Source: Octopus sinensis (taxonomy: Eukaryota). Taken from it: 64,000 nucleotides of DNA. Of the stretch, positions 215 through 61,028 are shown one piece after another. The translations under genes and the position numbers were made by a program. The stretch covers positions 11,346,001-11,410,000 of the forward strand of contig NC_043017.1 of the NCBI RefSeq assembly GCF_006345805.1. Reading direction: 5' to 3'. Position 1 is the first letter of the stretch; every line of letters starts with the position of its first letter. The notes beneath the pieces were generated by a model, which was not told where the DNA came from, ran no database searches, and saw only the letters and a list, made by a program, of their open reading frames with translations.

Positions 215-397
215 AAAAATGTTCTGTAGTTTCCATACCCAATGGCATCATTACATCAAACAGTTCCTCGACCGAACCAATCTCACACAAGACCTACATT
301 TACATAAAATGTTCGCCGGGTTTTCTTTTAGATGGAACAAGTTCTCTGTTTTGTAACTTTGGTAAATGGTCCTCAGAAATACCTTCCTGTGTTCCAA
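215..397 (+). CDS. CCP/Sushi exon A1 (internal exon; gene start lies upstream of the window)
   Basis: ttccag acceptor, A|GTAAGT donor, 183 nt, phase 1-1. KCSVVSIPNG...PISHKTYIYIKCSPGFLLDGTSSLFCNFGKWSSEIPSCVP: 4 Cys plus Trp of the CCP consensus. Confidence 0.93.
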
Positions 398-485
398 GTA
401 AGTTGTCCATGTTTTTGTTTCATTTCTAAAAATTAATGTCTTTATTTCTAAAAGAAAAAGAAAAAACAGAAATTTTTTTACACAT

Positions 486-884
486 AGGAGGAGCGGCTGT
501 GTGGTAAGTAGCTTGTTTTACCAACCACATGGTTTCGGGTTCAGTCCCACTGCGTGGCATCTTGGGCAAGTGTCTTCTACTATAGCCTCAGGCCGACCAA
601 AGCCTTGTGAGTGGATTTGATAGACGGAAACTGAAAGAAGCCCGTCGTATATGTGTGTATATATATATATGCCTGTGTGTGTTTGTGTGTGTCCCCCTAG
701 CATTGCTTGACAACCGATGCTGGTGTGTTTACGTCCCCGTTACTTAGCGGTTCGGCAAAAGAGACCGATAGAATAAGTACTGGGCTTACAAAATAATAAG
801 TCCCGGGGTCGAGTTGCTCGATTAAAGGCAGTGCTCCAGCATGGCCGCAGTCAAATGACTGAAACAAGTAAAAGAGTAAAAGAG
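486..884 (+). mobile_element. tRNA-derived SINE, family A, full length
   Basis: A-box/B-box-like head (GGCTGTGTGG...GGTTCAGTCCC), CTTGGGCAAG CORE-like segment, internal TA/TG microsatellite, GTAAAAGA-repeat tail. Many copies in the window. Confidence 0.85.
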
Positions 885-1139
885 AATATGTGTGTGTGTC
901 AGTATGTGTGTGTGTGTGTGTGCGAAAATTTTTCATGGCTATAATTCTAAGTTTCCACCATATAAGTCTAATACTGGGGCATATCAACCCATGGAAAAGA
1001 AACGGATATTAATACACATGGAACTGGCCCCATGCCTATTGTTTTTGCGATAAATATGCCACTGATCTATGAGGTCATCAGTTTCATTTCTGGCAGCACA
1101 CTGTGTCATCATCATTGTCATCATCATCATCATTTAAAT

Positions 1140-1505
1140 GTTCATGTCCTTTGCTAGCATGGGTTTGACGATGACAACGATGATGATGATGATGATAACA
1201 ATGACACTAATAATGATGATGGCGACAACAATGATGACGACAATGATCATGATGATGACAATAATAATGATGATGATGACGACGATGAAAATGATGACTG
1301 GCGACGATGACGATAATAATGATGATGATAATGACGATGATGACAATAATGAAAATGATGACAGTGGCGACAACGATGGCGATGACGATAATAATGATGG
1401 TGATAATGATGATGACGACGATGATGAAAATGATGACAGTGGCGATGACGATGACGATAATAATGATGGTGATAGTGATGATGACGACGACGATGATGAC
1501 AACTG
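1140..1505. repeat. Compound GAT/GAC/AAT microsatellite
   Basis: Source of the poly-D, poly-M and poly-S ORFs. Similar compound tracts at 34700-35240, 48345-48830 and 61060-61500. Long TA/CA tracts at 1825-2430, 26625-26970 and 60040-60810. Confidence 0.95.
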
Positions 1506-2709
1506 ATGATATCCATTTCATAAGGAAGTCCTCTCTTTTGAATTACACTCCAACGCTCTCGTGATGACCATTATGGTTCTAAGTGATCTCATTAGAGACT
1601 CTGACCACGGCAGACTTACAGCAACGCTTGACCATTCATCTCAATGAGCTCCTTCTGACTCTAATTAATAGGAAAAAAAATTGTTTATTTACTTATCTAT
1701 TTATTTTGCTTTTCATTGACGAATATTTGGAGCATTCATTAAGTGGTTAAGCATAAGTGTTGGATATTGAGTGACAACTTGAGCAGTGTGCTGGGGCATG
1801 AGGTGCTTCTTATCTGGTTAATCTGATGTGTGTGTGTGTGTATATATATATATATATATATATATATATATATATATATATATATATTATATATATATAT
1901 ATATATATATACACACACACATGCACATCCATGCATATGCACACATACGTATGAGTACACGTGTATATGTATATATATATATATATACGCACATATATAT
2001 GCGTATATATATACTCCCCCCCCACACATATGTATATCAGATTATATAGATAAAATCAGCATGTGCCAAGACAAGTGTACTTCTGTATCTGTGGTTTACA
2101 CACAAACACACACACACATACACACACATATATATATAAATATATATATAGGTATGTATGTATGTATATATATATATATATATATGTATGTATATATATA
2201 TGTATGTATATATGTATGTATATATATACACATATATATATATATATATATACATACATATATACATATATATACATAAATGTATACATATGTATATACA
2301 TGTATATACATACATACATACCTACATATATATATATATATATATATATATACATCATCATCGATAATGATGATGATGATATACAATGTATGTATATGTG
2401 TGTGTGTGTGTATATACACACACACACACATAAAAAGTGTCGTCTGCCTGATCTCCTATTGCAATATGATACGTCTCTTGCCTTGTGTTCATTCTATACA
2501 TTTTAATTAAAGACCGTTTAATGAGCTACAACTTAGCTGAAAAGTTTTAATAATACATAGAACAAGCAAAATGTTTAAAGGTATTAAGCCATGGTCTCAC
2601 TTTCTCTCTCTCTCTCTCTCTCTCTCCCTCTCTCTCTCTCTCTTTTCCTCTCTCTCTCTGTTCTGTGTTCAAATCATAACAGTTTTAACAAAATTATTAA
2701 CAGTGGTAT

Positions 2710-3035
2710 CTTGGGCAAGTGTCTTCTGCTATAGCCCCGGGCCGACCAATGCCTTGTGAGTGGATTTGGTAGACGGAAACTGAAAGAAGCCTGTCGTATA
2801 TATGTATATATATATATATATGTATGTGTGTTTGTGTGACTGTGTTTGTCCCCCTAGCATTGCTTGACAACCGAGGCTGGTGTGTTTACATCCCCGTCAC
2901 TTACCGGTTCGGCAAAAGAGACCGATAGAATAAGTACTGGGCTTACAAAGAATAAGTCCCGGGGTCGATTTGCTCGACTAAAGGCGGTGCTCCAGCATGG
3001 CCGTAGTGAAAATGACTGAAACAAGTAAAAGAGAG
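2710..3035 (+). mobile_element. SINE family A, 5' truncated
   Basis: Near-identical to 486-884 from the CTTGGGCAAG segment onward. Confidence 0.85.
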
Positions 3036-58739: not shown

Positions 58740-58977
58740 GCACTCTGCAAGTTAGAGGAACACCAATGAGACAAGTGGAGAACTTTGTCTATTTTGGGGA
58801 TGTAGTCAAGTGTAATGGAAATCAGGATGCTGAATTGAATGCTAGAATTGCAGGAACCGATAGAGTAATACACCATCTCCAGCATTCAATCTTCAGAAGA
58901 GGGGAAGTCGGTTAAAATGTTAAACTCACCGTCTTTGATTTGGTGCCTATCTTAACCTATGGTTATGAATGCTGGGT
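58740..58977 (+). mobile_element. RTE-clade LINE fragment
   Basis: QVENFVYFG...ELNARI...PILTYGYECW matches the post-RT region of RTE elements. Confidence 0.65.
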
Positions 58978-58995
58978 ATATATATATATATATAT

Positions 58996-60048
58996 ATTTC
59001 AACAATTGAGGGCAAAATTAATTAATTATTAATCAATTTCACCAAGTGTTCAGTATGCAAAGGGACCATTCAAGGCGAATTCAAATTATTACATTATATA
59101 AAAGGGCTTAGTAAAATAAATTACTTTGCCGCATACTGAACTCATTAGAAATAGCAGCTAAAAAACTTTTTTAAGGCTATTCTAATACTTAAAGAAAATC
59201 TCTCTCATATATAGTGTTTGCATAATTTAACTCACAAAAGTTTGGGGGTAATGACATCGAAAAATCAAATGCTAAGGTTATTCGAGAACGTACGTTTCAA
59301 GATTAGTCAAAACAACATTTCTATCATCGGCTCGGAAATTCCTTGGTTTGGATTTGGAAACACTGAAAATAAGAACATACCCTCTCGAAGATCTGCTCCC
59401 AACTAACAGTGTCAACAAATTCAAAATAAGCAAGCGAAGAATCTCTGTTCTCCCCTTTCACCAGCGTGGGTTAAAATCATCAAACTCTATGCTTATTTCG
59501 GTAAAGTCCGAAGCATTAATCAGAGGGAGATTAATTATAATTTCAACAATTGAGGGCAAAATTAATTAATTATTAATCAATTTCACCAAGTGTTCAGTAT
59601 GCAAAGGGACCATTCAAGGCGAATTCAATTATTACATTATATAAAAGGGCTTAGTAAAATAAATTACTTTGCCGCATACTGAACTCATTAGAAATAGCAG
59701 CTAAAAAACTTTTTTAAGGCTATTTCTAATACTTAAGAAAATCTCTCTCATATATAGTGTTTGCATAATTTAACTCACAAAAGTTTGGGGGTAATGACAT
59801 CGAAAAATCAAATGCTAAGGTTATTCGAGAACGTACGTTTCAAGATTAGTCAAAACAACATTTCTATCATCGGCTCGGAAATTCCTTGGTTTGGATTTGG
59901 AAACACTGAAAATAAGAACATACCCTCTCGAAGATCTGCTCCCAACTTTAAGTATTAGAAATAGCCTTAAAAAAGTTTTTTAGCTGCTATTTCTAATGAG
60001 TTCAGTATGCGGCAAAGTAATTTATTTTACTAAGCCCTTTTATATAAT
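58996..60048. repeat. Direct duplication of about 410 bp plus TIR element
   Basis: 58996-59404 is repeated at 59540-59947. About 100-bp TIRs at 59636-59736 and 59948-60048, with an extra left TIR in the first copy. Confidence 0.85.
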
Positions 60049-60227
60049 ATATATTATATATATATATATATACAATACATATATATACATATATATATAT
60101 ATATATATATATATATATATATATATATATATACATATACATATATATACATATATATATATATATATATAATATATATATATATATATATATATATATA
60201 TATATATATACATATACATATATATAT

Positions 60228-60425
60228 ACGGCATGATAGATCGTTAGCTCCTACACGCATTTTTCTCTCCTTGTTTCTTTTCTGTGTATCTTTCTGTCAA
60301 AGAGCATAGGCTCGAAACGTAAAAGACTTGTTCTATTTCTATTCCTGAGCGCTATACTAATACATTTGTTTGTTTGTACTCCACCTGCCTTCGTCTTTTG
60401 TTTATTTTCGTAAACCTTCCCGTTA
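60228..60425 (+). mobile_element. Second well-preserved copy of the hammerhead-bearing repeat
   Basis: Near-identical to about 47470-47650. Fold at 60289-60326 carries a G8A change. Confidence 0.65.
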
Positions 60426-60842
60426 TATATATGTATATATATATATATTATATATATATATATATATATATATAATATATATACGTGTATATATATATGT
60501 GTATATATATATATATATATATGTATATGTATATGTATATACATATGTATATAATATATATTATATATATTATATATATATATATATATATTATATATAT
60601 ATATATATATATATATAATATATATACGTGTATATATATGTGTATATATATATATAATATATATATATATATGTATATATATATATATATATATATATAT
60701 ATTATATATATATATATATATATATATATATATATATATATATATATAATATATATATATATACATACATATATATGTGTGTGTGTGTACATATATATAT
60801 ATATATCATGTTTGTTATTCTGTGCCTTGGAATATTTTGCAG

Positions 60843-61028
60843 GGCCTTGTGTACTGCCAGAATTCAAAGAGACAAGCTACAGATTCCTGAACGACGAGCC
60901 AGTGGTAAACTTCACCATTCCAAGTGGTACCTACATCCATGTGATCTGTGAGAAGCCCCATCTCATACCCACAGTAGTGCTTTGTCACTACGGTAAATGG
61001 GTGCTGCCAGTGCGTTCCTGTTTTGACG
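60843..61028 (+). CDS. CCP/Sushi exon B7
   Basis: ttgcag acceptor, G|GTTAGT donor, 186 nt. [61 protein letters not shown]. Confidence 0.92.

Follow-up and report, generated by a model that had tools for sequence, protein, structure and literature searches.

Several families of animal proteins are built largely or wholly from complement control protein (CCP, or Sushi) modules. The vertebrate regulators of complement activation (RCA; factor H, C4BP, CR1/CR2, DAF and MCP) are CCP-only proteins, either secreted or at the cell surface, encoded by adjacent genes with mostly one phase-1 exon per module. Beta2-glycoprotein I (5 modules) and FXIII-B (10 modules) are soluble CCP-only carriers or binders, and because these proteins do other things, a CCP-only make-up need not mean complement. 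Many CCP modules are also found in the extracellular protein SVEP1/polydom, which has about 3500 amino acids (aa) and combines about 30 CCPs with vWA, HYR, EGF and pentraxin domains. Moreover, Drosophila Hikaru genki (an immunoglobulin [Ig] domain plus CCPs) and C. elegans LEV-9 (CCPs plus WAP) are secreted and organise receptors in the synaptic cleft; Hikaru genki has five or fewer CCPs, and its Ig domain is N-terminal. We are aware of no lophotrochozoan in which a regulator of complement-like opsonisation has been characterised, though C3 homologues are known in squid and octopus. Here, we analyse a 64,000-nucleotide (nt) stretch of the Octopus sinensis genome (CM016879.1:11346001-11410000, referred to as the window), in which a reading of the sequence alone had noted 19 diverged CCP exons in two blocks, A and B, and had suggested a candidate cluster of all-CCP genes, RCA-like or for adhesion or scaffolding. 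We find that the exons lie in two neighbouring genes, and we consider it probable that these are two secreted multi-CCP genes of a coleoid-only family, rather than pieces of SVEP1 or factor H.

Results

We identified exons with a six-frame scan for peptides of the form Cys...Cys...Cys...Trp...Cys, followed by a check of AG/GT boundaries and pyrimidine tracts. Barring a few low-complexity artefacts, peptides with this CCP-like pattern occurred only on the plus strand of the window, where 19 one-module CCP exons were rebuilt independently. All acceptors (19/19) are AG and all donors (18/18) are GT, mostly GTAAGT or GTAAGA, with a pyrimidine content of 60-95% just 5' of each acceptor; the lengths of all internal exons are divisible by 3, with phase 1 at both ends. 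The four CCP cysteines are found in every one of the 19 modules and the Trp in 18, the exception being the second module of block B, with Phe. A strict search that combined the pattern with splice sites yielded nothing on the minus strand and nothing in 50 shuffles. Furthermore, a hidden Markov model (HMM) built from our first 18 modules recovered the nineteenth, at 49606-49803, and the module HMM run over the window gave 19 plus-strand matches at E <= 2e-7, the best minus-strand match having an E value of about 1.

Spliced in silico, the 12 exons of block A give 2354 nt (783 aa and a stop) and the seven exons of block B give 1377 nt (459 codons). The Pfam Sushi profile (PF00084) matched block A with an E value of 8.8e-63 and block B with 8.9e-15, and the full-length A protein scored 232.7 bits and B 64 bits against a cut-off of 20.7. 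A CCP module has about 60 aa, with four Cys paired I-III and II-IV, a conserved Trp between the third and fourth Cys, and an all-beta fold. The four Cys, the Trp and the all-beta fold are thus present, more weakly for B, in which most modules fall under the Pfam per-domain threshold. Modules of one protein are 22-28% identical to each other, no domain type other than CCP was found between the exons within the window, and Rfam and tRNA scans of the window produced no matches. The rebuilt coordinates agree base for base with public gene models, and the public models of three species splice-map exactly (14 exons for A, 10 exons for B; 7/7 tested models without mismatch). We conclude that the 19 CCP exons are real and belong to two neighbouring annotated secreted CCP-repeat genes. 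Much of what the sequence-only reading had claimed is borne out by these results, including the 19 one-exon modules with clean splice sites, the in-frame joining to about 784 and 459 residues, the single phase-1 exon per CCP, the strong divergence of the modules, the lack of other domain types between them, the division into two transcription blocks, and the match to a Sushi profile that it had proposed as a check.

Block A and residues 96-878 of O. sinensis XP_029649248.1 (LOC115222969) show 100% identity; this protein is annotated as "SVEP1 isoform X1", and its species agrees with the octopus origin that had been supposed. The coding sequence of gene A is spread over 14 exons. A leader exon of 97 nt and the CCP1 exon are all that lies upstream of the window; the other 12, on the plus strand, are the window exons. 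The first of these, exon 3 (CCP2, 215..397), has AG/GT boundaries, phase 1-1, four Cys and a Trp, and is the same as annotated exon 17306-17488 of L002 (L001-L008 are labels of public locus or contig sequences outside the window, with coordinates local to each). Seven exons are supported alike by the pattern, the HMM, the splice sites and the public model: exons 4 (CCP3, 3993..4187), 5 (CCP4, 7880..8071), 6 (CCP5, 9287..9478), 8 (CCP7, 13793..13987), 9 (CCP8, 15730..15939), 10 (CCP9, 17602..17802) and 13 (CCP12, 27803..28003). Exons 7 (CCP6, 11842..12051), 11 (CCP10, 20580..20765) and 12 (CCP11, 24395..24589) are supported by the HMM and the public model. The last coding exon (CCP13, 30985..31178) encodes a module with six Cys and the conserved tail CDCGS, with its TGA stop at 31176-31178; an AATAAA lies at 31947, 769 nt 3' of this stop. 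The complete protein of 878 aa consists of a signal peptide and 13 CCPs, with Sushi as its sole Pfam family and with no membrane anchor, and it ends in CDCGS.

In the mature gene A protein, 56/56 cysteines are invariant among the six sequences compared. These include four beyond the usual four per module that are invariant from Octopus to decapodiforms: C372, the fifth cysteine of CCP6, which lies in an insertion; C674, the fifth of CCP10, beside the Trp; C850; and C876. A C-terminal tail of CDCG followed by S, A or G is likewise kept from Octopus to decapodiforms. CCP6 is the most conserved module of the protein (62% identity to the decapodiform orthologue), and its inserted loop around C372 has a predicted local distance difference test (pLDDT) score below 50 in the structure model described below. 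The extra cysteines may form long-range or intermolecular disulfides.

Two variant public models of gene A deserve comment. In the O. vulgaris isoform CAI9738442.1 (755 aa), the reading frame continues past the CCP11 donor into the intron (24590-24612 of the window) and ends in ...NERKYRRKLS before a stop; this would be either a truncated 11-CCP product made by intron retention or a model artefact. The O. sinensis "isoform X2" (XP_036367669.1, 807 aa), which lacks a signal peptide and starts with a +1-frame reading of the CCP1 exon (L002 16417-16602), is probably an annotation artefact.

Both transcripts and peptides speak for the expression of gene A. Its relatives of 868-872 aa are encoded by 2.6-3.3 kb contigs of sequencing-run assemblies, which we read as decapodiform mRNAs. 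One of these, contig L005, is a contiguous 2.8-kb transcript in which the whole open reading frame (ORF) of an 872-aa gene A orthologue is uninterrupted; therefore, the exon joins of gene A are made in vivo in a distant relative. A second decapodiform cluster contains many further transcripts, and the decapodiform transcripts terminate at CDCG and a stop. In a proteogenomic study of O. vulgaris skin mucus, the gene A protein (A0A6P7TDP8) was detected with four peptides (supplementary files 3 and 4 of PMC10138644), one of which, EVTGGTIQVNGK, maps to the CCP11 exon at 24395-24589 (supplementary file 3 of PMC10138644), and de novo transcript ORFs of 768 and 891 aa from the same study match gene A (PMC10138644). 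That paper discusses a "complement factor H-like" protein, A0A6P7TXA6, which is distinct from gene B (PMC10138644). Euprymna haemocytes have likewise yielded a partial protein with six Sushi modules, whose orthology to gene A is not confirmed (PMC3349304). Thus, gene A is really made and is present in mucus, and spliced products, whose absence would have spoken against the sequence-only reading, exist both as full-length transcripts in a distant cephalopod and as peptides identified by mass spectrometry.

We examined how far the family extends. The gene A protein is 89% identical to its orthologue in O. bimaculoides, 66% to that in Argonauta, and 45-46% to the two clusters of 868-872 aa proteins, with orthologue lengths of 868-878 aa throughout. 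In an exhaustive HMMER pass with gene A over 1.84 billion representatives, we obtained 2786 hits, of which one, the decapodiform cluster, was a collinear, single-stretch relative; the remaining hits were long CCP-rich proteins that matched in 3-37 stretches with 27-38% local identity, and the named proteins that we looked up among the top multi-stretch hits were from amphioxus and fish. With gene B, relatives were found only among Octopus and Argonauta proteins (the gene B and C queries were padded with Gly-Ser filler, and real residues alone were scored). The matches outside cephalopods are thus generic CCP similarity, and the family appears to be restricted to coleoid cephalopods as far as these searches reach. 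Since the sole collinear relatives are from cephalopods and the other matches are multi-stretch, the names "SVEP1" and "complement factor H-like" are best-hit labels, not statements of orthology; that automated annotation would apply just such names had been foreseen. A literature search on the gene accession numbers returned nothing, and we found no functional paper on these genes. Both genes are already in public annotation, under misleading names and functionally uncharacterised.

The pattern of substitution points to constraint. We compared nonsynonymous with synonymous substitution rates (dN/dS) in the O. sinensis and O. bimaculoides pair, as dS to Argonauta and decapodiforms is saturated, and obtained 0.35 for A (dS 0.145) and 0.24 for B (dS 0.11). 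The values for single modules are noisy: three exceed 1, each from a module with a proportion of synonymous differences (pS) of 0.024-0.026, too few substitutions for a call of positive selection. Selection on A and B is purifying, though only moderately so. The sequence-only reading had proposed purifying selection with diversified surfaces; the first part agrees with the dN/dS of 0.24-0.35, but adaptive diversification does not follow, as no module is convincingly above 1. The leader of gene A has 34% identity between Octopus and Argonauta.

The order of modules in gene A is old. A module tree of 64 columns, in which deep relationships are unresolved and which we used for positional orthology alone, pairs nearly every A module with the same-position module of Argonauta and of the decapodiform; therefore, the 13-module order predates the octopod-decapodiform split, and the modules have not undergone concerted evolution. 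In the same tree, A2 and A4-A11 form a loose A-only group, the B modules are scattered, and most C modules (of a third gene, C, described below) fall with most factor H modules in one unresolved comb. Such a tree had been proposed as a check. It does not show A and B to have arisen from each other by duplication, and we see no evidence in these sequences that they are duplicates.

We also examined an AlphaFold model of gene A, which has a mean pLDDT of 75 and consists of an N-terminal helix (the leader) and 13 all-beta modules at 70-85. The low predicted template modelling (pTM) score of 0.31 is as expected for a flexible rod. Foldseek matches to the model were all CCP arrays (CR2, CR1, factor H, beta2-glycoprotein I, FXIII-B, DAF, CD46 and Crry), and a sequence search of the PDB returned factor H, FXIII-B, beta2-glycoprotein I and poxvirus complement control proteins. 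For this predicted structure, then, the matches confirm the CCP fold and do not discriminate among functions.

Block B corresponds to CCP1-7 of XP_029648920.2 (712 aa), annotated as "complement factor H-like", whose architecture is nine CCPs and a C-terminal Ig domain with no hydrophobic anchor. Its exons are on the plus strand, and the last six in the window are CCP2 (49606..49803; HMM, splice sites and public model), CCP3 (51896..52087), CCP4 (54244..54435; basic, with a net charge of +7), CCP5 (56145..56381; long, 78 aa), CCP6 (58289..58483) and CCP7 (60843..61028; the last gene B exon inside the window), of which CCP3 to CCP7 are each supported by the pattern, the HMM and the public model. 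At the usual Trp position, CCP2 has Phe in O. sinensis and Leu in Argonauta. Past the window lie the exons of CCP8, CCP9 and the Ig domain (L001 32610-32813, 33820-34074 and 41420-41754, plus strand), supported by the public model, Pfam and PDB matches. The Pfam "ig" family is over its cut-off in the tail of the Argonauta orthologue and slightly under it in Octopus, and the tail matches Ig domains of CEACAM, DIP, Dscam and titin in PDB sequence searches. Thus, the earlier claim of all-CCP genes holds for gene A but not for gene B, whose Ig exon lies outside the window.

The 5' end of gene B is a puzzle. The CCP1 exon (46303..46479) has its annotated ATG at 46335, and the models of O. sinensis, O. 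bimaculoides and Argonauta all begin at a Met inside the exon. However, coding sequence runs from the AG acceptor at 46303 (xGCQKLRNSKY, which holds the first cysteine), and both this acceptor and the 32 nt before the Met (46303-46334) are kept as far as Argonauta, with synonymous substitutions. Therefore, an upstream phase-1 exon must exist, and the incomplete 5' end of gene B in four genome annotations is a probable annotation defect. An ATG with a hydrophobic run and a phase-1 GT donor was sought in the A-B spacer of three species by two heuristic scans, which returned microsatellite-derived junk and no credible gene B leader, and blastn and translated comparisons of the Octopus and Argonauta spacers found multi-copy SINE-like (short interspersed nuclear element-like) repeats only. 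Two candidates were rejected. A hydrophobic in-frame reading just 5' of the exon at 46303 is the polypyrimidine tract, with a stop, no ATG and no other AG, and the first exon (42895-42994) of the O. vulgaris gene B model CAI9738440.1 is an artefact inside a decayed retroelement that is absent from the O. bimaculoides and Argonauta loci. The leader of gene B is thus either a short, fast-evolving exon that escapes detection or the upstream exons of gene A, borrowed.

Gene B is followed at 4.7 kb by a third secreted CCP gene, gene C (XP_029649017.1 in O. sinensis, XP_014767624.1 in O. bimaculoides), which lies tail-to-tail with B and outside the window. It occupies L001 46505-51754 on the minus strand in O. 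sinensis, convergent to B, and L008 10001-66960 in O. bimaculoides, a span of 57 kb. The protein has 775 aa, with a signal peptide and about 12 CCPs, and Sushi is its sole Pfam family; its modules depart less from the canonical CCP consensus than do the modules of the other two genes. O. sinensis, O. bimaculoides and Argonauta hians all have the genes in the order A(+), B(+), C(-). Three multi-CCP genes are thus adjacent at one locus, and no further gene is called within the 10 kb visible past each cluster end. The CCP gene cluster proposed from sequence is, in this respect, larger than the window, and its order is kept to Argonauta.

The non-coding parts of the locus are rich in repeats. The spacer between A and B (31179..46302) has SINE-like repeats, microsatellites, a unit of about 1.23 kb duplicated in tandem (38658-41161), and, at 42213-43188 on the plus strand, a decayed reverse-transcriptase fragment, where two ORFs resemble remains of a non-LTR (long terminal repeat) retrotransposon with an FMDD motif and a weak RVT_1 match (E 0.023, under the cut-off). 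Several SINE-like families are dispersed over introns and spacer; an intron repeat at 6895-7742 comprises 2.1 copies of a 405-bp unit with 98% identity; and (TTA)n/(ATT)n is repeated for about 160 units at both 34729-35214 and 48346-48828. Gene A spans 38 kb in O. sinensis (L002) versus 20.5 kb in O. bimaculoides (L006), and the spacer 15 kb versus 6.6 kb (L001 versus L007). Because coding exon lengths are identical, this size gap is due to expansion of repeats in introns and spacer.

Discussion

We favour the view that A and B are secreted multi-CCP genes of a coleoid-only family. Each protein would form a long, semi-rigid, soluble extracellular rod, with its modules as separate binding faces, and the two might act as multivalent binders in mucus and haemolymph. 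The four extra invariant cysteines and the CDCGS tail of A could provide covalent dimers or links to the mucus gel. By analogy, the leading specific candidate for a function, which we put forward tentatively, is an RCA-like role, in which the proteins would bind deposited C3 or thioester-containing protein (TEP), or polyanions of self surfaces, and so steer opsonisation. We entertain this idea because the make-up is soluble and all-CCP, the genes are clustered, the location is mucosal, evolution is fairly fast, and cephalopods have C3 homologues, one of which has been reported in octopus and squid haemocytes (PMC4199593; PMC3349304). The next candidate would be binding of microbes or of the mucus matrix. 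A bolder version, in which A, B and C are an independently assembled coleoid counterpart of the RCA locus that controls deposition of C3 or thioester proteins on mucus-covered skin, with the B array spliced to the leader or upstream CCP exons of A such that one promoter yields alternative CCP rods, strikes us as highly doubtful.

A number of observations weigh against the secreted-binder view or its complement version. Identity to factor H is 22-24%, the level given by any CCP array, and we know of no description in molluscs of a factor I-type protease, which RCA cofactor activity needs. For gene B, Pfam at threshold detects 1-2/9 modules, the others being recognised by the Cys/Trp pattern, our own HMM and exon structure; no public model has a signal peptide; and there is no gene B transcript in the sequence collection that we searched. 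The structure model of gene B, made from three sequences, is poor (pLDDT 46.5), so that the Ig call rests on the Pfam and PDB sequence matches. Finally, the mucus proteome is also rich in intracellular proteins, and so does not fix the site of action of gene A (PMC10138644).

The missing leader of gene B raises the question of whether A and B are two genes at all. They might instead be parts of a single, complex unit of transcription, with the B array spliced to the A leader, or onto A after CCP12 with skipping of the stop-bearing CCP13, to give, for example, a protein of 12+9 CCPs and an Ig domain (about 1500 aa). With every exon in phase 1, any A-to-B join would keep the reading frame, and the two blocks have the same strand and order in three genomes; moreover, B opens at a conserved phase-1 acceptor with conserved coding before its annotated Met, its spacer holds no credible leader in three species, every public model of it lacks a signal peptide, and the sole modelled upstream exon sits in a decayed retrotransposon fragment absent from other species. 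We nonetheless consider a single unit unlikely. There is no fused A-B model or transcript in four annotations, the peptide-matched octopus ORFs of 768 and 891 aa fit A alone, the decapodiform transcripts stop after CDCG, and A has its own stop with an AATAAA 769 nt further on; a short, fast-evolving leader could also escape our scans, as the A leader itself is just 34% identical between Octopus and Argonauta.

If A and B are separate secreted proteins, they need not be immune factors, and could be extracellular matrix or synaptic scaffolds, for which Hikaru genki, LEV-9 and shell or epithelial Sushi proteins are models. Gene B joins CCPs with an Ig domain of the cell-adhesion type (best matches CEACAM, DIP and Dscam), the invariant odd cysteines and Cys-rich tail of A suit covalent assembly, and strict keeping of module order and content over a deep split is seen more often in structural partners than in genes caught in an arms race; Sushi proteins are, in addition, recurrent in mollusc shell and mucus secretomes (PMC6368272). 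On the other hand, A was detected in skin mucus, not in neural tissue, a dN/dS of 0.35 exceeds what is usual for core scaffolds, orthology to Hikaru genki or LEV-9 is not apparent, though no direct comparison was made, and the Ig domain of B is C-terminal; a scaffold role seems to us distinctly unlikely. As for the exons being the CCP portion of some conserved multi-domain orthologue (SVEP1/polydom, CSMD or a true factor H), the annotation names and the one non-CCP domain of B outside the window would fit, but this is extremely improbable and for gene A already contradicted, as the full proteins have 878 and 712 aa with no vWA, EGF, pentraxin, HYR or CUB in Pfam, the only collinear relatives of A are cephalopod proteins of the same length, factor H and SVEP1-like matches have 19-34% identity in many disordered stretches, and the 10 kb upstream of A contain no called gene.

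On the reading of A and B as two secreted multi-CCP genes, the locus is an otherwise ordinary, already predicted pair, whose misleading database names can now be corrected, as neither gene is an orthologue of SVEP1 or factor H. The locus is valuable mainly because it offers a candidate mollusc complement regulator that can be put to the test: gene A can be expressed and encodes a complete soluble 13-CCP protein, with protein evidence in mucus and coleoid-wide orthologues.

Comparison with known systems

SVEP1/polydom is like the octopus genes in having many CCP modules and in being extracellular, but gene A has 878 aa and Sushi modules only. In CSMD (CUB-Sushi) proteins, CUB and Sushi domains alternate and a transmembrane segment is present, but neither A nor B has a CUB match or a membrane anchor. 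Hikaru genki and gene B have in common CCPs and one Ig domain, a likeness of domain types alone. Beta2-glycoprotein I and FXIII-B are high-ranking sequence and fold matches to A, but they show no collinear similarity, and their partners are vertebrate-specific.

The vertebrate RCA genes offer a further parallel. RCA proteins are among the best sequence and fold matches to gene A, and the identity of modules inside one protein is similar (28% in A versus 26.5% in deer factor H); A and C are CCP-only, as RCA proteins are, whereas B is not, owing to its Ig domain. Common descent, in contrast, finds no support, as identity is 19-24%, in many stretches, and the A modules do not pair with factor H modules. 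The octopus group also has just three genes, one of them convergent. The proposal of an RCA-like cluster thus keeps its architectural half and loses any orthology to vertebrate RCA genes, and on the sequences compared here the octopus locus appears to be RCA-like in architecture alone and unrelated to the vertebrate genes.

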